The notes beneath the pieces are model-generated. The model did not search any database. It was not told the origin of the DNA and was given only the letters and a program-made list of their open reading frames with translations. 64,000 bases of DNA, from positions 62,001 through 126,000 of IMG/VR virus record IMGVR_UViG_3300034050_000451. One strand, written 5' to 3'. The stretch's first letter is position 1; each line of letters opens with the position of its first letter. This document shows positions 5,668-40,500 of the stretch, in pieces. The position numbers and the translations under genes were made by a program.

Positions 5668-8328
5668 TTAGTCTATTGCTTCGGTGATGGCTTGAGTTAT
5701 ATAGAATTGATTACTATCATCTAACGCAGTTAATACAATCGTTCCATCAAATCTTCTTTGAATAGTTTTGTTATAATTTCCATAAACCATTGGGGCTGGG
5801 TGTAATTCAGTAACTGTTAATACTAAATCAGTAGTTCCACCAAATGAACCAGATGCTATTGTTATAGTATCATCCACTTCGTATAGATTTCCACTATTTG
5901 TAATTGCAATATTACTAACAATACTTGATGCAACAGTTACTTCAAATACCGAACCCGAACCAAACCCTGCAGTTGAACCAGTTAAATCTGAATAAACTCC
6001 ATCAGTTCCATCGGTTATCGAAGATGATATGGTATTGATTACCCCTAAATATGTGGTAAAATCATAATCATCCAATTCCGTTTCTATTCTATTATATTGG
6101 AAGTCATTACCTATTCTATTGTATGTAAATCTATCTCCAATATTGTTATCGTAGAAGTATTCTCCGATTATATTGTCAGTAAAACTATTTCCAATTACAT
6201 TACCTCTATACGAACTGCCACCAAATCCAAAACCATCACCAATCATATTATCAGTAAAATCATTTCCAATTTTATTACTTTTGAAATCATTAGCAATGGT
6301 GTTATCAATAAAATTATTTAATATAAAATTCTCCACGAACCCATTACCAATATTATTTTCAATAGTATAATCACCAAATATGTTACTGATACAGCCTTCT
6401 CCTATATCGTTTCCGGTAAAAATATTACCAATAGTATTACTATTAAACCCATCTCCAATTTCATTTCCTACAAATGCATAACCAATTTTATTTGAGATAA
6501 AACTACCTGAAATTAAATTTCCTTTCATCTCATTACCTATTTGATTGTACTCAAACGATTCTAGTTCACCATTATTTACTATTGTATTCGATTCAAAATC
6601 ACTTTCAATATTATTGTGTAAAAATTCATTATTAATAGTATTATCGTAAAAACCACTACCGATTACATTATCCTCAAAAGATTGGCTAACAATATTATCA
6701 TAAAAATCATTACCGATTTTGTTTCGGGAAAAATTCGTATCACCATAATCATCAGACTCTCCTATATCGTTATTTCGAAAACTAGAACCTATTTGATTAT
6801 CTTCGGTCCAACTGTAAAAGTTATTATTATAAACTTCATGTCCTATTATTGTATTACCTAAGAATGATGAAAAGAAGTTATTATTATAAACCTCATCCGC
6901 TATTGTATTTTCTCTAAATTCATTGTAGGTCTTATTTCCGTAAAAACTTTCACCTATTCTATTATCACCAAATTCACCACCTAACACATTATTATAAAAC
7001 CCATTAAGAGTATTTTTACTAAATTCATCAAGTATGATGTTGTGGTCAAAACCTCCGTTGATTATGTTATAATAAAAATCATCATCTGATGTGTAGAAGT
7101 TATTATAGAACTCACCATTAATGATATTGTAATCAAAATCATCCTCATCCTCATCTCCAAAATGATTATTGTGGAACTCACCACTAACTGTGTTGTATCT
7201 AAAATCACAAACAATTATATTATTGTAAAAACTATCTTTGATTATGTTATTATCAAAATCGTTATTAATAATATTATTATAAAATCTATCCATAACTATA
7301 TTAGAGTTAGAACTAGCATCATTAAATGTGTTATTTCTAAAAACTTGTGAGAATGAATTATCTCTATAAGTGTTTTCACCTTTGAATACATTGTTTGGTA
7401 ATAGGAAAGTATTTTCATCCCATACCGTAAATGCAGCCGTATTTGTAGATGTGTTATTAAAACAGTCTCCTATATACTCAAAGGTTGGTATTTCTATTGA
7501 AGCTGAATTAGATAGGATGTTATTTTGTTTCCAAGACACTCCTTCTAATAGATTTGCATCTAACAAACGAGTATCACTAGGAGAGTTATATCTACTTCCA
7601 GTAACAACCATACGATAATCATCTTCAATTGATACGATTTCATAGTAAAATACAAGAGGGTCATTATTGATATTCAAAACACCAACAACACTTCCAGTTG
7701 TGAAATTTTCAAAAAATGTTCCACTACCGGTGATAAAAGCAAAACTACCAGATTCTTCAACAGAAATAGTTCCATCATAAACATCTTCAGAATAATATGC
7801 ATCATATCTTTTGAAAAGAACTTCTCTGAAATCGTAATCCATTTCGTTTCCTTGATTATCTTTTCTATATATAATTCTACCAAATGCAGGACTATCAGTT
7901 ACTTCGGTTTGATTAAATGTAATATCGTATTTAATATTATCATTTGGATATTCGGGTTGATATGCATCTGATGCCAAAGAACCGGAGTCTAATGCGAATA
8001 CAATTATAGGTGAAATACTACCTGTTCTATAATTACCAACTTGAATTGAGTTACCATAAACATCATAATCCGGTTGGTCATAACAAGTCCTAAAATCGGT
8101 AATCTTATAGTAAGTACCAGGTGTTAATGAATCAGTCGCTAATGAAGCGGTTAATCCATTATAAGTGGTTTCTACTAATCCACCACCAGCTCCACCACCG
8201 GTTAGATTACCTTCACTATCTTTTGCTTTGATAGAGCCATTTGTTGTATCTATAAACAAATTATACCCACCTTCTAATGGAGTATCTAAATCTGCGGCTA
8301 CTTGCCCTTGTAATTGAATGTATTGCAT
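5668..8328 (-). CDS. Fibre/spike-like virion protein with an Asn-rich beta-helix repeat region
   Basis: LTPGTYYKITDF motif and a long run of approximately 11-aa N-x-I-G-x-x-F-x-x-N repeats. Confidence 0.7.
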   Translation of the reverse strand: MQYIQLQGQVAADLDTPLEGGYNLFIDTTNGSIKAKDSEGNLTGGGAGGGLVETTYNGLTASLATDSLTPGTYYKITDFRTCYDQPDYDVYGNSIQVGNYRTGSISPIIVFALDSGSLASDAYQPEYPNDNIKYDITFNQTEVTDSPAFGRIIYRKDNQGNEMDYDFREVLFKRYDAYYSEDVYDGTISVEESGSFAFITGSGTFFENFTTGSVVGVLNINNDPLVFYYEIVSIEDDYRMVVTGSRYNSPSDTRLLDANLLEGVSWKQNNILSNSASIEIPTFEYIGDCFNNTSTNTAAFTVWDENTFLLPNNVFKGENTYRDNSFSQVFRNNTFNDASSNSNIVMDRFYNNIINNDFDNNIIKDSFYNNIIVCDFRYNTVSGEFHNNHFGDEDEDDFDYNIINGEFYNNFYTSDDDFYYNIINGGFDHNIILDEFSKNTLNGFYNNVLGGEFGDNRIGESFYGNKTYNEFRENTIADEVYNNNFFSSFLGNTIIGHEVYNNNFYSWTEDNQIGSSFRNNDIGESDDYGDTNFSRNKIGNDFYDNIVSQSFEDNVIGSGFYDNTINNEFLHNNIESDFESNTIVNNGELESFEYNQIGNEMKGNLISGSFISNKIGYAFVGNEIGDGFNSNTIGNIFTGNDIGEGCISNIFGDYTIENNIGNGFVENFILNNFIDNTIANDFKSNKIGNDFTDNMIGDGFGFGGSSYRGNVIGNSFTDNIIGEYFYDNNIGDRFTYNRIGNDFQYNRIETELDDYDFTTYLGVINTISSSITDGTDGVYSDLTGSTAGFGSGSVFEVTVASSIVSNIAITNSGNLYEVDDTITIASGSFGGTTDLVLTVTELHPAPMVYGNYNKTIQRRFDGTIVLTALDDSNQFYITQAITEAID

Positions 8329-8332
8329 ATTT

Positions 8333-9097
8333 TTATATTATTGTTCCTGTTCCGTCTATTGATGAATTACCTATTAATATAACTTCTCCACCCACACTTA
8401 TCTTACCATTATTTTCAATAACACTATCTTTAAGTAATAGATTTCCACCTATAAATAGTGTTCCTTCTTTTTTGAATGATTTGTTTGCGGAGTATTCTAC
8501 TTCTTCATCACCACCTTCAATTAATAAAAATCCGTTTTCTAAAATATAATCTCCCGAAAAAGTTAATTGTTCTGTTTTTCTTATTAAATATGAATCGTAT
8601 GTGTTATTCCAATTTGTATTTGCTGATAAATTTGTTAGTTGTCTACCATCTCCTAAATAAGCCGATGCTGTTAGTGCTGCCGTATATTTTACAGTCTTTT
8701 GTCCACCAGCATTATTCTCAATTGAAAATGATGAAGTTTCTTGCGTTACCGCATCTACGAAAATAATTGAACCTTGTGATATATAAAGGTCTTTCCAAGC
8801 ATTTGATGGTGAACCTAAACTAAATGAAGATGTGAATGTTCCTTGTCCAGTTGCCGGTACTAATGAACCACTAATTAGGATTGAGCCACTTATAACTTGC
8901 TCACCTCTAAAGGTATTCGAACCTGTGATTGCAAATTTATTATTTAATGTGGCTTGTGATGCTGTATAATCATTAAAAGAAGATGTTGTTACTAAGAAAG
9001 ATAAATCACTATCTTGTGCAGAATCTCCTTTTGGTCCTTGAACACCAACCGATGATATAGTTACTTTTGTTAAATTTTGTGTTACTTTTATTGCCAT
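8333..9097 (-). CDS. Fibre-like virion protein
   Basis: GVQGPKGD short collagen motif, ITGSNTFRGEQVISGS, FSLGSPSNAWKDLY and YLGDGRQLTNL fibre-type motifs. Confidence 0.65.
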   Translation of the reverse strand: MAIKVTQNLTKVTISSVGVQGPKGDSAQDSDLSFLVTTSSFNDYTASQATLNNKFAITGSNTFRGEQVISGSILISGSLVPATGQGTFTSSFSLGSPSNAWKDLYISQGSIIFVDAVTQETSSFSIENNAGGQKTVKYTAALTASAYLGDGRQLTNLSANTNWNNTYDSYLIRKTEQLTFSGDYILENGFLLIEGGDEEVEYSANKSFKKEGTLFIGGNLLLKDSVIENNGKISVGGEVILIGNSSIDGTGTII

Positions 9098-9098
9098 T

Positions 9099-9482
9099 TT
9101 ATCTCGTTACGTTTTTAGATAATTTAACTTTACCTTCCAATAATCTCGTAACTTCACACCCTTTAACCACTTCTAAATCATAAACTGCTTCACCAAAATC
9201 TAATAAAGATGATGAATATGCTGATATATAGATACCTATTGAACCACTTTGTATTGGTGTTATACCATTTGAACCACTTAGATTAATACCCGTTCCACAA
9301 CTATCCGAAAGTGATGATGATAGTGATAACAATGTTGTTGTTGACTCTACGTGCGGACGTATTTGCATTCTCGCATGATAACCACTCAAATCAATTGCCG
9401 AACCACTTTCATCGGTCCAATCAATTTGAAAATTAGTTGTTGCTCCTTGCTCTATTACAAATGAGTATCTTCCTGCTGCCAT
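9099..9482 (-). CDS. Small virion adaptor-like protein
   Basis: IEQGATT...IDLSGYHARMQIR...AVYDLEV...RLLEGKV pattern, common upstream of phage fibre genes. Confidence 0.6.
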   Translation of the reverse strand: MAAGRYSFVIEQGATTNFQIDWTDESGSAIDLSGYHARMQIRPHVESTTTLLSLSSSLSDSCGTGINLSGSNGITPIQSGSIGIYISAYSSSLLDFGEAVYDLEVVKGCEVTRLLEGKVKLSKNVTR

Positions 9483-9502: not shown

Positions 9503-9510
9503 TATAAATA
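9503..9510 (-). promoter_or_regulatory. Putative phage late promoter (TATTTATA)
   Basis: Motif 20 nt upstream of the ATG at 9482. Confidence 0.6.
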
Positions 9511-9540
9511 TTGTAAAATTTAGTAATGGAAAAAAAAGCA

Positions 9541-9571
9541 TAAAAAAAGAGGAATAGTTCCCTATCCCTCT
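9541..9571 (-). terminator. Rho-independent terminator after the DUF2589 pair
   Basis: Minus strand AGAGGGATAG-GGAA-CTATTCCTCT followed by a T-run; near copy of the 11024-11053 terminator. Confidence 0.85.
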
Positions 9572-9588
9572 GATTTTATAATAAAATT

Positions 9589-10065
9589 TTATTTTTGATT
9601 CGGGTCTTCCAAATTTTTAATATATTCATCAATTAATCGACTAACCGCTTCCGGCTTTTCATCTGCCTTAAATTTTACTTTAATCTTAGCCATACCAGCT
9701 TCACTTGGATTGTAACCGGAATCAACCTCAATACCTTTGATATTGTGTTCGTATCCCTTTTTCTTAAATAACCCCAATAGAGATTTTTTAAGATTGGAAA
9801 CTTCCTTTTCTTCATCACCAAATATAAGTCTACAAGAGAACTCAATATCTAATTCTTCCAACCCAATAGATGAGTGGTCTGCTAAAATATAAAGAGGAAC
9901 AATCATATCCCTACCACCTATATTAAAGGAAGTAGTTTTGGGTGTACCATCTTCATTGAAATAGTTTCGGAGAGCATTAATATGCTGTCTTTCACTTATA
10001 CCTTGAGAAACCATGGCGGCCTCTAACAGACCGCCAACTAGTTCCTCTACATTTAATCTTGCCAT
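9589..10065 (-). CDS. DUF2589-family protein (short paralogue)
   Basis: EELVGGLLEAA...YFNEDGTPK...VPLYILADHSSIGLEELDIEF...PEAVSRLID pattern. Confidence 0.7.
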   Translation of the reverse strand: MARLNVEELVGGLLEAAMVSQGISERQHINALRNYFNEDGTPKTTSFNIGGRDMIVPLYILADHSSIGLEELDIEFSCRLIFGDEEKEVSNLKKSLLGLFKKKGYEHNIKGIEVDSGYNPSEAGMAKIKVKFKADEKPEAVSRLIDEYIKNLEDPNQK

Positions 10066-10091
10066 AATATATAACCTTTATTGTTTAATTA

Positions 10092-10694
10092 TTACTTAGC
10101 TGCAGTACCTTCTCCGAATGGAATTAACGATGGCTCTAACATTTGAGTTAGGTAATCAGATAATTTCAACATACCTTCAGTTGCTGGTAATTGCTCAGCA
10201 TGTACTTTTACATTGTATTTTGCTGAGTTATCAGTTGAACGAGTGTTTTCTTTGTTGGTTGAAACTTTACCTGCTACTTTAGCGTTAAAGCTCATTCCCC
10301 ACCATTTTCCACCTGCAGACATTTCATAGCTGTTTTCACTAGCTGATGTATCCTTCGATGCTTCAGATGTTTTAACTTCCATAGCGAATTCGATGTCCGC
10401 TGATGTAATAGCCAATGATGGTAGTGGTACTAATGGTAACATTGGAACTTTACTATACAATTTTTGTATTTCTTGTTCACCTGTATCTGCGTTAGTAACA
10501 ACACGATTCATTTCTACGTCTAATGAACGAGCAGATGTTTTACCTGTCTTTTCATCTTTTACGAAAGCAACTTCAGAAATGTACTTCCAAGTTACTTCAT
10601 TTAATTTTGCTTGCCCTTTAGCCATTCCAATAATAGGAGAAACAATTAGTTCTTCTATTGGAAGACCTGCGAACTGGTCTGCGATTGATGCCAT
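10092..10694 (-). CDS. DUF2589-family protein (long paralogue)
   Basis: FAGLPIEELIVSP...AKGQAKL...VPMLPLVPLPSLAI...IEFAMEVK...TRSTDNSAKYNVKVHAEQLPATEGM. Confidence 0.8.
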   Translation of the reverse strand: MASIADQFAGLPIEELIVSPIIGMAKGQAKLNEVTWKYISEVAFVKDEKTGKTSARSLDVEMNRVVTNADTGEQEIQKLYSKVPMLPLVPLPSLAITSADIEFAMEVKTSEASKDTSASENSYEMSAGGKWWGMSFNAKVAGKVSTNKENTRSTDNSAKYNVKVHAEQLPATEGMLKLSDYLTQMLEPSLIPFGEGTAAK

Positions 10695-10739
10695 AAAATT
10701 TATTTTTTTTTATATTAGTTTAACGTAACCAAAGTTGTT

Positions 10740-10747
10740 TATAAGTA
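10740..10747 (-). promoter_or_regulatory. Putative phage late promoter (TACTTATA)
   Basis: Variant of the recurrent motif upstream of the DUF2589 pair. Confidence 0.5.
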
Positions 10748-10774
10748 TGTAGTATTTTTTGAAAGCAAATAGCT

Positions 10775-10978
10775 TTATGAAAATTTAACCATACCCTTAT
10801 ATTTCTTTTTTATTTTATCTATTTCCGAAATTGCTTCCGTAAAACTTTTTTTAATTTCTTCATTTACAGTAAAATCCATTATAACTTCACAATGTGGGCA
10901 TGCCATCACTGGATGCTTTATAATAAATTGTAAAGTTAAACCAAGTGGTTGTTTACATGCGGGGCAGGGTAAAGCCAT
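10775..10978 (-). CDS. Small zinc-ribbon protein
   Basis: CPAC...CPHC; has its own upstream promoter motif. Confidence 0.7.
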   Translation of the reverse strand: MALPCPACKQPLGLTLQFIIKHPVMACPHCEVIMDFTVNEEIKKSFTEAISEIDKIKKKYKGMVKFS

Positions 10979-10993
10979 AAAATTCTACTTTAT

Positions 10994-11001
10994 TATAAGT
11001 A
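10994..11001 (-). promoter_or_regulatory. Putative phage late promoter (TACTTATA)
   Basis: Motif 15 nt upstream of the ATG at 10978. Confidence 0.55.
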
Positions 11002-11023
11002 TAAGAGTTTTAACAAAACCGCA

Positions 11024-11053
11024 TAAAAAAGAGGGATAGTTTCCTATCCCTCT
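11024..11053 (-). terminator. Rho-independent terminator after the major capsid gene
   Basis: Minus strand AGAGGGATAG-GAAA-CTATCCCTCT perfect 10-bp stem followed by a T-run. Confidence 0.9.
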
Positions 11054-11076
11054 AATTCTATAAAATTAAGTTTCTA

Positions 11077-12717
11077 TTAAATAGAAGCTAAATCTTTAAC
11101 AAAAATACGACCGTAGTACTCAGGACGAACCATTTTCTTAGCGTATCTTGTCATTACACCTCTACGAGGAGTAAAGTTTGTTGGGTCATACACCAAAGGA
11201 GTCATAATTAATGGAACGTATGGTGCGTAAACAGCTCCAGTTTCCAAGAAGTTTGAACCTCTGAATCCTAACAAGATTTCGTTTGAAGTCATGTAAGGGT
11301 TTTTGTAAACAGTGTATCTATTAGCGATAGCACCAACTTGCGTTACACCAGCTGCGAAAGATGCAGAATCCTTATCAGCGTTCACTGTAAATGCAGGAAT
11401 CGATTCTAAGATAGTACATACATCAGGAGAAGCAACAACGAAGTTAGCTCCACCTCTTAATGTCAATTGGTGAATTTTGTTAGATACTTTGTTTAATTTA
11501 GTACCTAAAGTTTGGAACCAAGTATTCTTTTGGTAAGCCATTCCAGTTGCTGCTCCAGACCATACGCCTGATGCTGCATTGTATTCTTCACCAATAGTTG
11601 CTGACCAATACTCAGTAGTTAAAGCGTTTGATTTTAACATATCTAAGATTTCTAAGTCAATCTCTAAAGAGATATAATCAGATAACATAGAAGTTAATTC
11701 CGCTTCAGCGTCAATTGAGTGGTAAGCGTTCAAATCTTGCGCCAATTCAGGAGTCCATACTGCTTTCAACTTACGAGTCTTAGCAACGATAGCCTCTGAT
11801 TTCAATTCTAAGTCAACCTCAGGAATATCGATATCAGTTCCGATTGTTCCTTCAGTATCTGCTCTTTTACCAGAGTTTTTACCATCTTCAAAATCACCTC
11901 TAGAGTAATCATTTGGTACAACTGAGTAAGTTAATACTACAGTTTGTGCAGCAGTTTTAGCAGTTTGTAAACCAGCAGATGCTGATACGAACATTACTAA
12001 GTTAGCTCCAGATACTTTGTGGAATTGATTTAAGTTAGTAAGTGAACCACTTGCTACGTTAAATGAACGTACACCATCTAAATCAGCTGTTGTTGGAGCT
12101 GTGAAAGTTGCTTTATGCACTTGTCCAGCTGCTACAGAAGCAGAAAGTTCAGATGTAAATCCTACATCAGCCCAAGATGCTGAAGTATAAGTGATTGCAG
12201 AGTGAGCGAAAGATGCAGTTACATCATTTACTGTGTATCCGAATCTACCTTCACCATATAAACCATTTTCAGCTACTGCAGTAGTACCGAAACCAGCACC
12301 AGCAGCAGAATCTTGTCCGTTACCACCAAAAAGTGATTTTCCAGAGAAAGTTGGGTTACCACCTTGAGCAGTACCATATTTGAAATCCAAATAGAATACA
12401 AGTCCAGAAGGTAAGTTCATAGGTTGTACACTAACGAATTCTTTAGAAGCAATCTCACCGAAGATTCTTCTTACTAAAGGTAAAGCTACACCGCTCCACT
12501 CTTCAGAGTTTGCACCAACACCAGTTTGTGTTGCTTCATCAAGCAATTGTTTTGCTTGGTTTTCCAAAAGTACAGCCATTGCACTTTGGTCTTTTGTCTT
12601 TAAGCCTTCAAGAAGTCCAGTTTTTTCCCATTTTGATTTAAGTTGACGAGTTTCGTTCAACATAACCGATTGTGGGTTCTTTCCTTCCATTAACTTAGAT
12701 AAATCGAAATTTGCCAT
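11077..12717 (-). CDS. gp23: Major capsid protein (T4 gp23-like)
   Basis: VSVQPMNLPSGLVFYLDF, AKTRKLKAVWTPELAQDLNAYHSIDAEAEL, YAPYVPL and PRRGVMTRYA. Confidence 0.97.
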   Translation of the reverse strand: MANFDLSKLMEGKNPQSVMLNETRQLKSKWEKTGLLEGLKTKDQSAMAVLLENQAKQLLDEATQTGVGANSEEWSGVALPLVRRIFGEIASKEFVSVQPMNLPSGLVFYLDFKYGTAQGGNPTFSGKSLFGGNGQDSAAGAGFGTTAVAENGLYGEGRFGYTVNDVTASFAHSAITYTSASWADVGFTSELSASVAAGQVHKATFTAPTTADLDGVRSFNVASGSLTNLNQFHKVSGANLVMFVSASAGLQTAKTAAQTVVLTYSVVPNDYSRGDFEDGKNSGKRADTEGTIGTDIDIPEVDLELKSEAIVAKTRKLKAVWTPELAQDLNAYHSIDAEAELTSMLSDYISLEIDLEILDMLKSNALTTEYWSATIGEEYNAASGVWSGAATGMAYQKNTWFQTLGTKLNKVSNKIHQLTLRGGANFVVASPDVCTILESIPAFTVNADKDSASFAAGVTQVGAIANRYTVYKNPYMTSNEILLGFRGSNFLETGAVYAPYVPLIMTPLVYDPTNFTPRRGVMTRYAKKMVRPEYYGRIFVKDLASI

Positions 12718-12755: not shown

Positions 12756-13778
12756 TTATTTAATGTTTGCAAGTTCTTTGAATCTTGCAGCCATTAGATT
12801 TGTGTTCTCAGAAATGATTTCTTTCTTAGGTGCAGTTGAACGAGTTGGCTTAGATGCTACGCTTTCAGCGATTGCTCTTTTAGCTTTTCTTTCAGTACCT
12901 GTAAAGTTCATTGATTCTGATAACGTTGCGAAAACTAATTTTACTTCTCTAACAGAAGTTGTTCTGTCAAGATTTTCTACAACTTTACCTTTTTGCTCGT
13001 TAGTTAAATTATAACCTCTAAACAATTTGTTAGCGTAAAGTAATTTTGCGTTCAATAAGTTTACTTCGTTGATTGTAGATTGTAATTTTTTGATTACTGA
13101 ATAAGCTTCTTCTAATTCTGCTTCTAATTCTGCAGAGTTATCAACAACTTCTTCTTCACCTTCAGTTACTTCCTCATCATCCCCGTAACCCATTTCTCTA
13201 AGGATTTCCTCTAAGTCGATTTCATCTTCTTCTTCAGATACAGGAGCTTCTTCTTCAGAACCCATTTCCATTTCTTCCTCTTCAGCTACAGGAGCTTCTT
13301 CGGGAGCAATTTCCATTTCTTCTTCTTCAGTTACTTCCTCTTCTTCAGAGTCCATACCCATTTCAAGTTCTCTGATGATTTCTTCTAAATCTAACTCATC
13401 TTCACCCATCTCATCTTCTTCAGACATTGATGCGTCATCAGCGTTAGTCGGGTCATCATACCCTTCAGCTTCTTCCATTGCTTCTTCAGAGTCCATTTCT
13501 GTTTCCTCTTCTTCAACAACATCAGTAGCTTCTTCTTCATTGCTTACCATAGCAGTTTGTTCTTCGTCATCACCCATGTCTAAATCCATTGAGTCCATCT
13601 CTTCTTCCATAGTTTCTTCCTCTTCACCTTCCATTTCAGCTTGTAGCTTTCTTGATAGGATAGATTGTAAACGTGGAGTAAAAGCTTCCTCTAATGCGAT
13701 TTTAGCGTTAGCGATAGCGGTTTCCCTTACAGCCTTGGCATCAGCAATTGCTTCTTTTAACAATTTTGAATTTGCCAT
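12756..13778 (-). CDS. Prohead core scaffolding protein (gp22-like)
   Basis: Very acidic, Glu-rich coiled-coil protein immediately upstream of the major capsid gene. Confidence 0.8.
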   Translation of the reverse strand: MANSKLLKEAIADAKAVRETAIANAKIALEEAFTPRLQSILSRKLQAEMEGEEEETMEEEMDSMDLDMGDDEEQTAMVSNEEEATDVVEEEETEMDSEEAMEEAEGYDDPTNADDASMSEEDEMGEDELDLEEIIRELEMGMDSEEEEVTEEEEMEIAPEEAPVAEEEEMEMGSEEEAPVSEEEDEIDLEEILREMGYGDDEEVTEGEEEVVDNSAELEAELEEAYSVIKKLQSTINEVNLLNAKLLYANKLFRGYNLTNEQKGKVVENLDRTTSVREVKLVFATLSESMNFTGTERKAKRAIAESVASKPTRSTAPKKEIISENTNLMAARFKELANIK

Positions 13779-14017: not shown

Positions 14018-14305
14018 TTAATACGATTGCCCAGTATTTATATTAAATTCAGGTATACCATAATATGCAATACCTACACCAGATGATTGTGTAATCTCAG
14101 TTATACTACCGAATACATCTACTCCAGCTGGTATTGTATTTAAACCAAATGAACCAGATATTTGTGAAGCATTAAATTTAAGGTCAGTTACTGTAGCTGT
14201 TACCGTCTTATAACGATATACATTACTAACTGTTAATTGCCTAGACCCACTTATAATTTGAGCCCCACCTAGCCCATACGCATGTTTGTTAGAATCGATA
14301 TACAT
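14018..14305 (-). CDS. Hypothetical small (probably virion) protein
   Basis: 95-aa co-oriented ORF with ISGS motifs like the structural proteins. Confidence 0.65.
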   Translation of the reverse strand: MYIDSNKHAYGLGGAQIISGSRQLTVSNVYRYKTVTATVTDLKFNASQISGSFGLNTIPAGVDVFGSITEITQSSGVGIAYYGIPEFNINTGQSY

Positions 14306-34551: not shown

Positions 34552-37500
34552 TTATCCCGTTGGAAGATTACCAATAGCTATCCAATACCCATCAACACTA
34601 TCTAATACTAAACTAACACCAGATGTGGTAAGGTTATATATATGATTATATCCATTTGAACCATTTGAACTTCTATAAGATGCACAAGTTACAACCGGTG
34701 GTGAACCAAATGTTACAGGGAATGTTACGTTAGCAGAACTATTTATTCTTCCCCATTGTATAATACTACCATCTGATAATTTTTGGTAATTATTTGTAGA
34801 CATTGAACTAGCAACCGTATTTGTTTGGTGTTGGTTTCCTAATCCAATAAGGTTATCGGTATAAGTATATGCAAACCTATTTGATGAGTTACCAATATTG
34901 TACAATGAATCAGATTCAGGTATAATATCACCCTTTGAATTAATAGCTGTTGAGGTATCAACCCCAAGACCAACTGTTTTTTCAAAATATGATATACCAC
35001 CGGCTGCTTTAAGTACTTCTTGATTAGCTGAACCTGCTGGTTTTCTTGGTATTCTAACATAGGTATCAGGTGTTGATACTACTTGAATACCACCGGCTTT
35101 AATCTCAACGAAATTGGATGGAACAGATACATTTAATATAGTATCGTATGTTGGTGTATTTGCTAAAGTTGGCCCAACAGTATGTGATTGGTATGTAAAT
35201 GAATATGAATTAATACTGGAACCAATATTTGCTCTTTGACCCGAATACCCATAAAATCTAATTGAATATCTAAATCTAATATTACCAGTAGATGTTAGAT
35301 TCATTGAGCGCGTTACACCAGTTTGGGCAGAAACATTATTTTGATAACCACTTATAGTGTTGGTTGAAATATATGTCCAAGTACCATCATTATGTGATAT
35401 AATATCATCTGAAACATAGTTATGAACTCCAGGTACAGAAAATGTATATACCCATTCATCGGTTTTAATAATTTCAACACTATCAACTAATACCAATTTA
35501 ATACCATTACCATCTTTGATGTTAATCATACTTTTACCAGCAACTAATTCAACAGTCTTTATTTGTTTATTATCGTTTAACCAAAATCCATGCGAATCAG
35601 ATACTCTAATAGTTTTACCACCGGCTGATACTTTGTAAACTTTATCAACTTTTCTCTTTTTAATTTTAGCTATTTCAAATTCACTAAATTTGTTTACTTC
35701 AGTATTATCTAATTTATCATTCCAACTCCATGCTATTATTTTTTCACCTTCAACAACATCTTTAGCAAGAATAGTTTCACCAGATGATAATATAATTTTA
35801 GTATCACCAGTTACGGATACAAAACTTTCAAGTTTTACGTTGTGGGTTAATATACCATTAACATAATAAGTATGCTTACCAGATACTCTAATGTTATAAA
35901 CATCATCGGTTTTCTCATTTATAGTTATTGATGTTATCTCAACTTCTTCATTTTCTGAATTTAGGAATATATCTCCAACATTTATTTTATCAGTTGTTTT
36001 AATACACCAAACACCATTTTGTTTAATAATATGTTTGTGTGAGTGTGTACATTCAATTAATCCATTATTTATATTGTAAATTTCATTATCAGCATATGAT
36101 TTGATATCCAACACCTCTTCAATTGTTTTTTCGGAATCGGATATATGGGTTGCAGTCCAATCATTTTCTTCGGAATATTTTGGTGTTAATGAATCAATAT
36201 CTAATGATTTAATAAAATCACCAATTTGAATATCTTTAATTTGTTTGAATGAACCATCACCCATTTCAATTAGTGATGTTCCAACTAAACACGTTCCACC
36301 TCCCCCTTCTTCTATATATTCTCCGGTATAATAATTACCAGCATTATATGAACTAACAGCTGCGGCTGTTCCAAGTAAAGTTCTACCCACAACAACACCA
36401 GTAGAAATATTAACTGCTTCTAAATTTAATTCTGCGTATGCAACAGATGGTGATGAATACCCACCATGGAATTGCCCATTGAATGTAGGTAAATACGATG
36501 GGTATGATGTGGTATGACTAACTCCTGCTGGAATTGATACAGATACGGCTGGTATATTTAGTGCAACTTCAAGTGCTCCTGCTGCTGTAACATTATATGA
36601 ACCCGTTGATGGTAATGATACCATATAACTCGAATAAACAAAATTGGCATTAGATGTATTTGTTGTTACCGATTGTGGTGTTGGATATACAACCCCCGAA
36701 CCCGTAAACTGAAAGTATTTAACATCACCTGTGGTTGTTGTTAATTCATTTGAAGGTGATATAATTACCTTTTTTTCACTACCAGTATAAAATTGTAATT
36801 CAGGTAAAGATGGGTCAAATATTATTTCACTATTATCATCACGTAAATTACCACTATCAGCATCAATAATCCAATCTCCGATTCTACCATCAGTTGCGTT
36901 AATACTACCAGATAAACCTGCATTATTAGCGTTTACATTTCCATTAGCATCAACAGTAAAATTATATCTAATTGGATTTGAACCAGAAATTATTCCTATG
37001 TTAATAGCTCCTCCATTTATTTCAGAACCATTAATTGTTGAACCTTGAACGTTTCCTGAGAAATTAACACCATCACCCGTATAGTTCAAATATGCACCAT
37101 CTTTACTTCGTAATGAGAATAACGGGTCATCTGACCCAGATGGAAATCCTAAAAATACACCAACCTCATCAAAACTTTGACTTAATTGCCCCATTGAAAG
37201 GTATGGTTTATCGGATTGATTTAATGTTGAACCTGATGTTGATAATCGCAATCCCTCACCAGAAATTATTCTAAATTCACGACTACCCGCTGATAATGAA
37301 CCTTGTGTATATGTGTAATCACCATTGGTATTGGGATAATAATAAGAGGCACTTGCGGCGGAATTAAATTTAATTGTTTGACCATATGGATTTGATGCTG
37401 ATAGAAATAATCGAGTTTCATCTTCAGAAATTCCATAAATTTTCATTGCAGGGAAATTCAAAACATTACCAATACCCAATACAGCTACATCAAATGCTTT

Positions 37501-40500
37501 TATAATATGAGATTTTAAATCACTTGGTACTTCTGGATATGCACTTTCAGGTTGGTCATAAAGTAATTCTTGTATAAAATCATAATATGATAATGGAAAA
37601 TCACCAGTTTGCCTTACTTCTAAATAATTTGCACCAGATGGCCATGCAATATATGAGTCTAAAGAAGAAGATACGACTTGCAGTGATGATGTTGTGTGGA
37701 ATGCAATTTGATAAGATGAACTATCTGCATATAATCCATTTGATAAAAATAATTTTGAATTACCAATTTCACTATTACTTGCACTATTACTTGCGCTTAA
37801 TATTCTATGATTCGTAGTAAGTGTACCAAATACCGTTAAAAGTGCAGAACCACTACCATCAAATGGATTAGGTCCTTTAAGTGCTCTATTTGCTCCAAAA
37901 CCTACTAGATTATTCAACCCAGCATATACATCATTATGTAGAGATGCTGTTACTTCCGTATTATATTGATATCCAACGGGGAATGTAGTTGGGAAGTAGA
38001 TACCAGATGGGTCAATTATCCATCCACCAAATTTACCAGCAGATGCTGATACAATACCAGATACATTTAATTCATTTCCATCCCAACGTAAGTGTCTTGT
38101 ACCATCACCATTTTCAATTGATAATAATCCAGTTGTTCCAGCAGTTCCAGTAGGTCCACCATCTTCAGTTACACCAATATAAACTCCCTTTTGTCCATAA
38201 CCTTGAATTGATTGTCCGATTGATATATATGGTTCACTATCTCCACCATAAATTGTAATTTGTGGATTAACATCATATGAAGTTGCTGGTGAACCTACAT
38301 TAATTGTATTTTTAATAAATGATTCTTCGAAGATACCAATCTTAGCTGCTACAAAGAAATCTTCTTCTCCTAACTCTTCCCAATAATCAGTTTGAGTATT
38401 AGGTTGTTTGGCGCCAATTAAAGTATATCCAGAGGGTACAGTATCAATTGATTGAGTATATAATCCAGAAACAGTATTTGATAAATAAGTATGAGGACCC
38501 GATGGTAATTTAGTTGCGTAATACATCTCAGGTGTACCATCTCCATTCTTATCAAATAAAACTGCATCTCTCCTTTTCTGATTTAAATCAAAAAGATAAT
38601 TAGTTGAACCACTCCACTCTCCTCTAAATACAACACCAGGACCAGTTGCTCCTTCAAATACTGTTGTTAATGATTGTGATAAGAAATAAGTTGCTCTACC
38701 ATTTTCTATATCAACTTTATAAACAATTGTAGCTGCTTTATTATCTTGTGGATTTGCCCAAGTTTGAATTGGTGCCACCGTAGCAGGACTTCCTGTTGGT
38801 CGATTTGTTTGAGTTATAAATCCGGGTTTACTATATAATGATGCTGAGAATTCTCCCAATGTACCAATAACATTACCAATTAAATCTAATGTTTCCTCAG
38901 AGTAAGTACTAACATGCGTTAATTCAGTAGTTCCTTTAAATGCTCTAATTTGTGTACCAGTACCAGTTAACGTTGTACTTCCATCAGTTTCAACTAATAC
39001 AGCAGTTGCTGGATTTGTTAATGAAACTTGATAGTTATCAGCTCCCGCTTTTATACCAGTAATAGTTACTTCAGATGTAGCAATTACCCCAGAGGTAGTA
39101 TTACCATCTCTAATTTGAACTTGCCATGTTGCATTTTCGCCAGGAGATGTAGCATCACCGGAACCAATTTCAAATACATTATCAGTACTAATTGTACTAT
39201 AAGCAAATCCATCTTTAAAATATTGGTAATAAGTTTGAGATGCGGTAACATTAAATGCAGTTGCCGTTAAAAATATTGAATCTAAGGGAGAAGTTACTAC
39301 ACCATCTCCATCAAAATTAACTACTAATGATGATGCAGCCAAACTAACCGAACGAGCATTTACTCCTTCTTTTTGTTTTGTAAAAGATTGTGTACGAGTT
39401 ACATATTGTGAACCAGTTACAATACCATTTGTAATTGAAAATGGTCTTATTAAAATTGAATAATCAATACTAGCTGAATCATCCGTCATATTACTCATTG
39501 ATACAAATAACATTGTATCATTTAACCCATTATCAGTTGTTTCCGTTTTTGATGCAGTTAATAAACCAACAGTAATATTATTTACCGAAATAGATGCGGT
39601 AAATGTTCCTGGTAATTCTTGTGAATTAAACTCTAAATATTCATCACCTTGCTTAACTTTTAAAGTTGTGTTTGTTGTTGTGTAATCATATACACCACCA
39701 TTTTCATCAGCAGATAACGCGAGTATTGTTGGGGCTAATTCAATATTGATTGCAGCTGCCCCATCAACACTTTTTTGGAATTGTTGAAAGAAACTTTGTG
39801 TATAATAAGATGCGGTATAGAATGGATGAATTTCTAATTTATATTCAACACTAGCGGTTAAATCAGTCATATTGCTAAATCCACTTATACTCATAGATGC
39901 ATCTCCCATTATTTCATCAAAGGTAGAATATTGAATTCCTTTTGTAATAATAGATGCAGTTGTAAATGTACCCGGTTTTTTACTACTTGTAAATATAAGT
40001 GGTAAGAATCCCTGCGTTATAGTAATATCCGTAGCTGCTGTTTCATAACTAAATACTCTACCTCTTTGGTCAGCATTTAAAGTTATTGGATTTGGATTAA
40101 TTTTTACTACAATTGCATCATCACCCGGGTCTCCATCGGGTACAGATACGAATGTTTTATCAATACTAATAGATGCTGATGTATAATCTTCTAAATAAGT
40201 AAATTTAGTACTTAATTGTTTTGTTTGAACTGCTTCATAAAATGGAATACCATTTTGACCGGGAATACCACTATTAATTATATTATTATCAAAATCCGTT
40301 ACCTCAACACTAATTCTTCTATCAAATGTACCGGTAACATAAAACATATAGTAATATGGTTCAATTGTTTCCGGGTCAACAGACATCGATGGGAATATAT
40401 TCAATGTACCACTTATAGGTGCTTCGTTTGTTCCTCTCAAATAGAATGAACCAGTTACTCTACCAATATTTGGAGTAAACTCTCTTTCGGTTCTTGATTT

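Follow-up and report, generated by a model that had tools for sequence, protein, structure and literature searches.

Paired DUF2589 genes in a mobile, late-type cassette of an aquatic jumbo phage: a possible lysis module

Between the major capsid protein (MCP) gene of a T4-like jumbo phage with a 270,865-bp genome and the next gene downstream lie three small genes, two of which encode members of a protein family without an assigned function. What such a set does for the phage, and whether its place behind the capsid gene has any bearing on this, are the questions raised by the locus. It forms part of a 64,000-nt stretch of DNA that was analyzed as a whole (the window, whose numbering is used below unless genome positions are given). 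Region 9589–10978 is filled by three minus-strand ORFs, and an earlier note made from the sequence alone had both the gene content and the coordinates exactly: Zn67 (10775–10978), whose 67-aa product is a zinc ribbon with two CPxC knuckles and, at the C terminus, a basic helix; D200 (10092–10694), encoding a 200-aa long-type DUF2589 protein; and D158 (9589–10065), encoding a 158-aa short-type paralogue of it. The flanking genes are also on the minus strand. Upstream is the gp23-type MCP gene (11077–12717; PF07068, 3.3e-76; phrog_138), and downstream is p127 (9099–9482), a 127-aa gene assigned to phrog_1084 and weakly similar to a tail-fiber assembly family. The earlier placing of the unit after the capsid gene describes this phage and 100%-identical copies; all other loci have different neighborhoods.

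The trio is bordered by a direct repeat of ~50 nt, with one copy upstream (11015–11063) and one downstream (9532–9581), both on the minus strand and spaced 1482–1483 nt apart (repeat families D2 and D4). Each copy contains a terminator hairpin, at 11030–11053 for the end of the capsid transcript and at 9548–9571 for the end of the cassette; in the whole genome, this hairpin occurs at these two sites only. A late-promoter-like motif, ATACTTATA, is found on the minus strand at 10994–11002, 16–24 nt 5′ of the Zn67 start codon, and again at 10740–10748 upstream of D200, while the next gene has its own late motif, ATATTTATA, after the downstream repeat copy (9503–9511, minus strand). The consensus ATAYTTATA occurs 20 times in the window against 8.4 ± 2.9 expected, with 19 of the 20 matches on the coding strand, and is mostly intergenic, 5′ of many structural genes. 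A scan for sigma-70 promoters found 12 where 9.9 were expected from shuffles, that is, no excess. With two ATAYTTATA-like motifs and terminator hairpins at its borders, the cassette is indeed the self-contained late-type unit, with promoters and terminator of its own, that had been described.

Both larger proteins are bona fide members of Pfam DUF2589 (PF11655). Against a gathering score of 23 bits, D200 scores 105.5 bits (4.5e-30) over profile positions 1–153 of 154, and D158 49.7 bits (6.8e-13) over positions 3–153. The long- and short-type family profiles align with a probability of 98.8%, and a search of the phage's own genome found exactly these two copies. D200 homologues form 994 clusters, the top 120 of which are all at least 91% identical. 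The predicted order of elements in D200 is N-terminal helix, beta-sheet, Ser/Thr-flanked hairpin, beta-strand, and C-terminal helix; its AF2 model (m33ea8f329e2a) has a pLDDT of 75, with values below 50 at residues 113–153. The D158 model (me61e9151179a; pLDDT 66) has the same topology.

The hairpin-coding region of D200 (residues 108–156; 10227–10373, minus strand) specifies Ser/Thr-rich arms and a GGKWWG tip. The hairpin seen in this one protein proves to be real and conserved in the long-type family: Ser and Thr make up 32% of it, and 67 of 74 sequences have an aromatic residue adjoining Gly at the tip. Strand periodicity is above that of shuffles in 95% of the 74 long-type sequences (median z 1.73); at the tip, the hydrophobic face is a short one, of about 7 and 11 residues, and some members of the family have only a weak one. 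D158 has a different insert at the equivalent position (about residues 83–111; 9733–9819, minus strand), as previously noted and as alignment, AF2 model, and aligned columns agree. In the phage lineage this insert is predicted to be a cationic amphipathic helix (…LKKSLLGLFKKKG…; helix at residues 91–96 in the AF2 model), which is limited to that lineage and a few others; the insert of the bacterial short paralogues is a variable loop, mostly acidic.

No signal peptide, lipobox, or transmembrane (TM) segment is found in the sequences of Zn67, D200, or D158, and no 19-residue window in them, or in the orthologues from the related locus L005 (D198 and D159 for the DUF2589 pair), reaches a Kyte-Doolittle value of 1.6. 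The DUF2589 proteins are soluble by prediction, and because they lack a signal peptide a secreted-toxin mode of action is impossible. This bears on the likeness to pore-forming toxins that the hairpin suggests at first sight. As in the aerolysin/ETX-MTX2 toxins, there is an amphipathic hairpin with Ser/Thr-rich arms and an aromatic tip, for which the prediction is disorder or lability in the monomer, and as in the bicomponent leukocidins there are two paralogous subunits. However, neither fold similarity nor a secretion signal accompanies these features; the core of D200 is an alpha/beta domain with a long helix at either terminus, the hairpin is present in one paralogue only, and action would be needed from the cytoplasmic side. 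The pore-former reading of the earlier note gains no support from fold searches, which found no similarity of the D200 model to an aerolysin-type or any other solved pore former in the PDB: the best Foldseek E-value was 0.87, and the best VIA-align Z-score against 48,161 chains was 4.4, with no pore-forming toxin among the leading matches. The same model retrieved only other DUF2589 proteins, and no solved fold, from AFDB clusters and the ESM Atlas. A profile search of PDB sequences and an Atlas feature search for D200 gave no match, and Pfam none to an aerolysin-type family; no informative family for the DUF2589 pair came from PADLOC, NCBIfam, or PHROGs, nor any match to a known defense family or a structural PHROG. 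A three-chain complex prediction for D200, Zn67, and D158 (score 0.08; mark 0.32) is uninformative on binding either way. In the searchable literature DUF2589 is mentioned twice, both times incidentally, and PF11655 nowhere.

Zn67 can be classed as a zinc ribbon, with putative metal binding, by its two conserved CxxC knuckles, which have the spacing of that class (about 15–20 residues): C5, C8, C27, and C30 do not vary among 29 sequences. Its Pfam matches are to Zn-ribbon/Trm112p families, all below cut-offs, and an Atlas feature search returned only unnamed clusters and generic Zn-ribbons. All of its relatives come from this phage clade and are 67 aa long. It adjoins the DUF2589 pair in every phage locus of sufficient length and is thus an obligatory part of the cassette in phages, its third gene. 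The bacterial counterpart is a third protein of ~86 aa, present in 74 of 80 loci, for which the Atlas feature search returned unnamed clusters only. No homology is detectable between the two small proteins (hhalign probability 0.2%).

The distribution of the trio among related phages is that of a unit which travels. Zn67, D200, and D158 are kept together in about 85 loci (all those long enough), in only three gene orders, which are cyclic permutations of one another, and in at least 31 neighborhoods. D200 and D158 are 79–96% identical (D200 alone, 79–85%) across genomes whose MCPs are 22–76% identical, and the dN/dS of the cassette is about 0.1: the three genes are inherited together as an obligate set, and purifying selection on them is strong. 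For the same genomes, dS is about 0.46 for D158 where it is about 1.0 for D200. DNA identity of 87% to a 299-kb contig ends exactly at the cassette limits (9602–11004). In the closest differently arranged relative, G001, the p127 homologue comes directly after the MCP gene, with a single terminator/promoter unit in the gap, and the trio lies elsewhere, ~226 kb from the capsid gene in record coordinates; G001 has a repeat of its own, of a hairpin plus ATATTTATA. Since MCP and p127 are adjacent in G001, the cassette was inserted between them in the present phage; p127 is the ancestral downstream neighbor of the capsid gene. The cassette thus moves both between and within very divergent jumbo phage genomes. 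Cultured phages are essentially without the family: their records contain no match to D200, and one unannotated fragment that matches a bacterial member. DUF2589 is therefore not common as a phage lysis gene.

A precedent for such movement is provided by PeSLs (PMC2839356, PMC4122927), the composite terminator/promoter elements by which genes of T4-like phages are shuffled. Here too a T4-type gene module lies between directly repeated stem-loop-plus-promoter units, and the indel relative to G001 falls exactly at such a unit; cyclically permuted gene orders are the expected result of excision and re-entry as a circle. Unlike in PeSLs, the promoter element resembles the late motif ATAYTTATA, not an early sigma-70-type promoter, and the flanking direct repeats of terminator and late motif bracket the trio in 13 of 53 distinct loci, found solely in the subclade nearest the window.

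What the family does outside phages is suggested by its bacterial neighbors. DUF2589 is mainly bacterial, and the operons in which it occurs are chromosomal and include hydrolase and response-regulator genes but no virion genes. The loci examined, 80 in all, were collected with one peptide pattern, their ORFs were called crudely, and they are phylogenetically clumped, with many from Xanthomonas, Luteibacter, and Oxalobacteraceae. The statement in the earlier note that DUF2589 genes usually occur as tandem pairs in bacteria was correct: a long and a short copy are found in at least 66 of the 80. A paired module was defined as a long type of ~200–230 aa, a short type of ~160–185 aa, and a small third gene, and the phage loci conform to it, with Zn67 as the third gene. 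A peptidoglycan hydrolase gene lies beside the module, on the same strand and within about 2.3 kb, in 56 of the 80 (54 plus 2). The enzymes belong to six mutually unrelated families (GH108+PG_binding_3, GH19, a PG_binding_1 protein, Rv2525c-like, PF11860 muramidase, and GH24 lysozyme). None of the 54 neighboring enzymes has a hydrophobic 19-residue window, and 38 of the 54 hydrolase operons include no TM-bearing ORF; there is also one natural Amidase_2–DUF2589 fusion. No muralytic gene was seen in 24 of the 80 loci, and no recognizable spanins in the bacterial cassettes. A response-regulator transcription factor adjoins the module in 38 of the 80, and there are plasmid examples as well. The family is, in short, genomically coupled to peptidoglycan hydrolases that lack an export signal.

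A lysis context is also apparent in some of the phages. L005, L007, and L008 share the order 2-TMD 90-aa holin-like protein, PG_binding_1+GH19 endolysin, then trio, with no recognizable spanin pair in loci of the L005 type; an endolysin adjoins the trio in 14 of 88 phage loci. TM segments are predicted in 30% of the gene families adjacent to the trio against 15% of other flanking families (p = 0.027). In the present phage the endolysin and holin-like genes are far from the trio, with (in genome positions) the endolysin at ~8.2–9.0 kb, the cassette at 71.6–73.0 kb, and a 2-TMD holin-like gene at ~233.4 kb, and in four other complete genomes the endolysin is at least 16 kb from the trio. The endolysin is 65–78% identical, likewise above capsid conservation, as is expected of host-envelope-facing modules. 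Of the functions proposed in the earlier note, lysis assistance gains independent support from the hydrolase neighbors in 56 of 80 bacterial loci, the Amidase_2 fusion, and the holin-like/endolysin/trio order in some relatives; for superinfection exclusion and anti-competitor activity no specific evidence was found, nor a match to any known-defense family.

The explanation to which we give the greatest weight, at a probability of roughly 0.4, is that the cassette is a mobile lysis module, late-expressed and membrane-active. The long and the short paralogue would assemble late in infection at the cytoplasmic face of the inner membrane. There the D200 hairpin, which has an aromatic tip and Ser/Thr arms and is predicted to lack a settled conformation, would enter or disrupt the bilayer, together with the cationic amphipathic helix that D158 has at the same position in this phage lineage. 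The signal-less endolysin could thereby reach the wall, or envelope breakdown could otherwise be completed, with the module replacing or accompanying a classical transmembrane holin. The small third protein, a Zn-ribbon in phages and the unrelated ~86-aa protein in bacteria, might control assembly or timing, in line with the regulator role that the earlier note proposed for Zn67. This reading is favored by the obligate trio, its mobility, the coupling to hydrolases, and the phage lysis context, and also by the membrane-type features found family-wide, the hairpin pLDDT below 50, the late motifs and terminators, contigs from RNA libraries of lake, estuary, and marine origin that cover D200 and D158, and an endolysin that is likewise better conserved than the capsid protein; the pore mechanism itself is inferred. 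Against it, fold searches found no pore former or solved relative, the hydrophobic face of the hairpin is short and in some members weak, the endolysin and holin-like gene are distant in this phage and the endolysin in four others, and 24 of the 80 bacterial loci, in a clumped sample, are without a muralytic gene. Since L005-type relatives already have a classical holin candidate, the trio may be unneeded for endolysin release.

Among known systems, the natural comparison is to holin-endolysin(-spanin) phage lysis cassettes and their domesticated derivatives, the type 10 secretion systems (PMC10109510, PMC10847048). Shared with these are a signal-less muralytic enzyme gene beside small accessory genes, the non-orthologous swapping of enzyme family at one slot (GH108, GH19, GH24, muramidase, amidase), and, as in regulated lysis/secretion cassettes, chromosomal bacterial copies under response-regulator control. 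In contrast to lysis cassettes, the DUF2589 accessories have no TM segment, lipobox, or signal peptide, and consist of a paralogous pair of about 160–220 aa plus a small soluble protein, from a family essentially absent from cultured phage genomes. Unlike holins, D200, D158, and Zn67 have no transmembrane helix, and the holin-style adjacency to endolysin genes holds for 14 of 88 phage and 56 of 80 bacterial loci but not for this genome or four other complete ones; unlike spanins, the trio has no N-terminal TM anchor or lipoprotein signal. Bacterial gasdermins could conceivably be an analogy, as soluble cytoplasmic proteins proposed to insert beta-hairpins and lyse the producer from inside, although there is no sequence or fold relation, no evident protease partner or autoinhibitory tail, and the neighborhood here is one of wall hydrolases.

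Other readings fit some of the same observations. The neighborhood and fusion evidence indicates physical cooperation with hydrolases but not its nature, so the DUF2589 complex could act in the cytoplasm, without any membrane lesion, by regulating or chaperoning the muralytic enzyme. As an antiholin-like timing device or a scaffold, it would keep the hydrolase inactive, or deliver it, until some trigger comes. The predicted solubility of the proteins would suit this, as would the response regulators adjoining 38 of 80 bacterial modules, which suggest tight control. It is nonetheless unlikely: it would leave unexplained both the conserved amphipathic, aromatic-tipped hairpin and the passage of signal-less hydrolases through the membrane where the operon encodes no TM protein (38 of 54); the partner would have to recognize six or seven unrelated enzyme folds; and most phage genomes have the trio and the endolysin far apart. 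The trio could also be a spanin substitute or “disruptin” that acts on the outer envelope after holin and endolysin, its proteins being released through holin lesions and attacking the outer membrane by way of the D158 helix and the D200 hairpin. This would account for the strongly cationic amphipathic helix in the phage-lineage short paralogue and for the L005-type loci, where the trio directly follows a holin candidate and an endolysin and no spanin pair is recognizable; recognizable spanins are likewise missing from the bacterial cassettes. Such a role seems a long shot: few lineages besides that of the phages share the cationic helix, the inserts of bacteria being acidic and variable, and holin-less bacterial operons would lack an inner-membrane step.

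The features of the locus itself, with its own promoters and terminator and its insertion between core genes, are those of a moron-type accessory cassette, which might serve superinfection exclusion, the blocking of host defenses, or the killing of competing or co-infecting cells, with any membrane effect unrelated to lysis by the phage's own endolysin. Horizontal exchange, mosaicism within the cassette (the dS of D158 relative to D200), the many neighborhoods, and the usual location of phage lysis genes elsewhere in the genome all agree with this. Exclusion functions, however, are usually early or lysogenic, and late-type motifs common to structural genes fit them poorly; there is no match to known defense families, the bacterial hydrolase association is left without account, and universal retention with a dN/dS of about 0.1 across very divergent phages would be unusual for dispensable morons. 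We consider it improbable. The place immediately after the MCP gene, the late-type motifs and strong terminator, the very high sequence conservation, and the abundance of relatives in metagenomes might instead suggest a structural or decoration pair associated with the virion or head and expressed with the capsid protein. This is very unlikely indeed, and was rejected on genomic context: capsid adjacency is peculiar to this phage, MCP and p127 being adjacent in G001 with the trio ~226 kb away; the trio has at least 31 neighborhoods; the family is mainly bacterial, in operons without virion genes; and there is no structural PHROG match.

If the lysis-module reading is extended to the whole family, DUF2589 pairs would be a hitherto unrecognized class of soluble, two-component, hairpin-inserting membrane breachers, working from the cytoplasmic side in place of transmembrane holins, common to the regulated autolysis/secretion cassettes of many bacteria and to a large clade of aquatic jumbo phages, and traveling in the latter as a self-contained late unit by terminator/promoter-mediated recombination. 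This extension is rather doubtful. Should the lysis-module inference be right, a widespread domain now without a function would gain one, and a non-transmembrane component would join the few ways of moving wall hydrolases across the inner membrane. It would also bear on those holin-less endolysin and “type 10 secretion” loci for which the export step lacks an explanation, and offer a small portable lysis module for engineering. Whatever the function, the trio, bordered by composite terminator/promoter repeats, is a clear case of a gene set both conserved and exchanged across jumbo phages with far-diverged capsid proteins (22–46% identity), extending PeSL-type modular shuffling to the late genes of uncultured aquatic T4-like jumbo phages.

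The source virus record, of 270,865 bp and judged complete, contributes its bases 62001-126000 to the window, in which every gene around the cassette is on the minus strand. In order of transcription, a 340-aa, very acidic protein (12756-13778) comes first, directly upstream of the gene for a gp23-type major capsid protein (11077-12717; PF07068, 3.3e-76). The cassette follows: Zn67, a 67-aa zinc-ribbon protein with two CPxC knuckles (10775-10978), and the long and short DUF2589 proteins D200 (200 aa, 10092-10694) and D158 (158 aa, 9589-10065), both above the Pfam gathering score and the only copies of this domain in the whole genome. Downstream of D158 are p127, a 127-aa protein assigned to phrog_1084, and then tail-fibre-like genes, all on the same strand. 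Long-type and short-type profiles align with 98.8% probability over ~173 columns, with their inserts at the same position. The ORFs, the DUF2589 scores and this alignment bear out the cassette coordinates, quoted peptide and gene content of the earlier note, as well as its claim that the short paralogue has a different insert at the place equivalent to the hairpin of the long one. The 340-aa protein, with Glu, Asp and Met extremely frequent in its first two thirds and a basic C-terminal part, has no Pfam or PHROG match; it may be a scaffold or prohead-core-like protein. Also in the window, on the minus strand, are an 886-aa protein (5668-8328) of fibre-like look, mostly short Asn/Ile/Phe/Gly-rich repeats (NNxFxxNxIGxxF), and a single ORF of 2789 aa (34552-42921).

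The three genes are an obligate set under strong purifying selection (dN/dS ~0.05-0.15). Homologues of D200 form 994 clusters, the top 120 all at least 91% identical, and the trio of Zn67, D200 and D158 is always complete in the 88 metagenomic or viral loci wherever the contig reaches far enough. This strict linkage shows only that Zn67 belongs to the system. Just three gene orders were found in these loci (Zn67-D200-D158, D200-D158-Zn67 and D158-Zn67-D200): all three are rotations of a single circle, the remaining three possible orders being absent, a pattern that excision and circular re-insertion would produce. Across 85 loci there are at least 31 different neighbor pairs around the trio, and a 299-kb contig matches the window at 87% DNA identity exactly over 9602-11004, with unrelated flanks. 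In four related jumbo phage genomes the trio is conserved far better than the capsid protein: identities for capsid protein, D200 and D158 are 76, 85 and 96% in G001; 31-39, 84 and 80% in G003; 35-46, 84 and 95% in G004; and 22, 79 and ~53% in G002. Synonymous divergence (dS) of D158 falls to ~0.46 in a genome with a capsid protein of <50% identity, and dS of D200 and of D158 are unequal within one genome; these values indicate that exchange and recombination have occurred within the cassette. G001 is the closest relative with a different arrangement: there a p127 homologue comes directly after the capsid gene, separated from it by one terminator-plus-ATATTTATA unit, and the trio is elsewhere in the genome. 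The cassette is horizontally mobile, carries late-type signals, and in the window has been inserted between the capsid gene and p127.

Terminator-like hairpins on the coding strand follow the capsid stop (11053-11030) and the D158 stop (9571-9548), the only two sites of this hairpin in the 270-kb genome. Both are inside a ~50-nt direct repeat (9532-9581 and 11015-11063; spacing 1482-1483 nt, identity 88-90%). The motif ATAYTTATA is over-represented in the window (20 matches, 8.4 +/- 2.9 expected; 19 of the 20 on the coding strand), precedes both Zn67 and D200, and occupies most intergenic spaces ahead of structural genes, with minus-strand examples at 2768, 19114, 21370, 28907, 29300, 51251, 55549, 57009 and 63424. 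It is likely a late-promoter element of the phage, similar in character to the T4 late TATAAATA. With these copies and hairpins, the description of the cassette as having its own late-type promoters and terminator is fair at the level of sequence motifs, from which we infer promoter activity. Of 53 distinct loci, 13 have flanking repeats, and these belong without exception to the subclade nearest the window; in G001 the trio is bracketed by a 45-nt direct repeat consisting of a hairpin, different from that of the window, and then ATATTTATA. In form these repeats resemble "PeSLs", composite units of terminator and promoter that reportedly shuffle genes in T4-like phages (PMC2839356, PMC4122927), but their promoter element is a late-type motif, unlike that of PeSLs. 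RNA libraries of lake, estuary and marine origin contain contigs that cover D200 and D158 at 85-95% likeness, with coverage ending at the cassette borders; since DNA carry-over is possible and contig depth is no measure of expression, these contigs are compatible with transcription of cassette relatives in nature rather than proof of it.

An AF2 model of D200, for which 74 diverse members of the family were the input (mean pLDDT 75), runs from a long N-terminal helix (residues 13-43) through three long strands (57-108), a hairpin (122-143) and one more strand (155-168) to a C-terminal helix; pLDDT is below 50 in residues 113-153, which comprise the hairpin and some of its arms. The D158 model shares this topology, less confidently predicted (pLDDT 66), and has a short helix in the insert, which is a cationic amphipathic helix in the phage lineage and a variable, mostly acidic loop in bacteria. 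Ser makes up 22% and Thr 10% of the hairpin segment in 74 long-type sequences; 67 of these have an aromatic residue beside Gly near its middle, and in 95% its alternating hydrophobicity exceeds that of shuffles (median z 1.73). In D200, Y122, M124 and A126 with M133, F135, A137, V139 and V143 make a hydrophobic face at the tip, around GGKWWG, and the middle section is polar (Ser/Thr/Asn). The resemblance to aerolysin-like beta pore formers proposed earlier is thus real for the hairpin sequence. Membership of that family is unsupported, as no solved structure resembles the D200 model (Foldseek best E 0.87; exhaustive VIA-align best Z 4.4); searches of AFDB and Atlas returned DUF2589 proteins alone.

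A genome scan with a subfamily alignment gave 80 bacterial loci (Myxococcota, Burkholderiales, Xanthomonadales, Desulfobacterota, Vibrio, Amycolatopsis and others), at least 66 of them with a long and a short paralogue and 74 with a highly conserved third protein of ~86 aa, lacking Cys (consensus KRIVVGSxNP, GEHQVVLQW, YHVGFxRKP; e.g., L129:7709-7969 and L137:7677-7994). The latter has no Pfam family or named look-alike; homology to Zn67 was rejected. Within ~2.3 kb on the same strand, 54 of the 80 have a muralytic or peptidoglycan-binding gene: GH108 plus PG_binding_3 in 24, GH19 in 20, a PG_binding_1 protein in nine and an Rv2525c-like protein in one, with representatives confirmed by Pfam. 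Two of the remaining loci have a PF11860 muramidase or GH24 lysozyme, and a 484-aa metagenomic protein (P0217, L184:2514-3968) is a natural fusion of a peptidoglycan amidase domain (Amidase_2) with DUF2589 of the long type; the C-terminal part of this protein looks partly duplicated, possibly by sequencing or assembly error. Because a single peptide pattern retrieved these loci and they clump phylogenetically, their counts lack independence; a more robust figure is that of unrelated enzyme families, six with a seventh in the fusion. Replacement of enzyme families at a fixed slot is a pattern known from lysis cassettes, and here points to functional coupling of DUF2589 modules to wall hydrolysis. 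A hydrophobic 19-residue window is absent from all 54 enzymes, and with it, by this crude hydropathy test, a signal or anchor; in 38 of the 54 operons no other ORF has such a segment either. In the wider family a long/short pair goes with a small protein, and in bacteria this set is coupled to signal-less wall hydrolases, most of the operons being holin-less.

Among phages, three loci (L005, L007, L008) have the order 90-aa protein with two transmembrane segments, PG_binding_1+GH19 endolysin, Zn67, long paralogue, short paralogue, secreted 240-aa protein; L003 has the same order minus the endolysin. An endolysin flanks the trio in 14 of 88 loci. Transmembrane segments occur in 30% of families immediately adjoining the trio vs. 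15% of other flanking families (p = 0.027), weak evidence of a lysis context; ORFs of fetched loci followed a simple longest-frame rule, and transmembrane calls a hydropathy threshold alone. In the window's genome a homologous endolysin (~8175-8996, minus; L175:1336-2157) and an intact gene for the two-segment protein (L176) lie a long way from the cassette, and the same is true of four other complete genomes. Like the trio, the endolysin is much better conserved than the capsid protein (65-78% identity among jumbo phages with capsid proteins 22-46% identical; the window's genome and G001-G004, L185-L188).

With a probability of roughly 0.4, the DUF2589 pair would act on the membrane from the cytoplasmic side and supply or help the membrane step of lysis. 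The module could instead be a regulator or chaperone of the hydrolase, which we consider unlikely; response-regulator transcription factors are present in 38 of the 80 bacterial loci, and plasmids of Francisella and Fulvitalea also have them next to DUF2589 genes. A moron for competition or exclusion is a similarly doubtful reading, and an outer-membrane disruptor a still less probable one. A virion protein is very improbable; the capsid gene adjoins the trio only in 100%-identical copies of the window's phage. Some residual probability belongs to none of these. A role for the pair in the membrane step of lysis is the reading preferred here.

A literature search found no experimental paper on the DUF2589 family. 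Incidentally, Bacteroides fragilis BF9343_2744, a DUF2589 gene, is among those differentially expressed under meropenem, a cell-wall-active drug (PMC11402942), which is compatible with a wall-related role. L005, a related phage contig of 173 kb, also has unusual cargo: an 825-aa TonB-dependent-receptor-like protein (CarboxypepD_reg, Plug, OMP_b-brl_3; 10093-12570), a PspC-domain protein (14038-14217) and many proteins with signal peptides, a hint of a Bacteroidota host.
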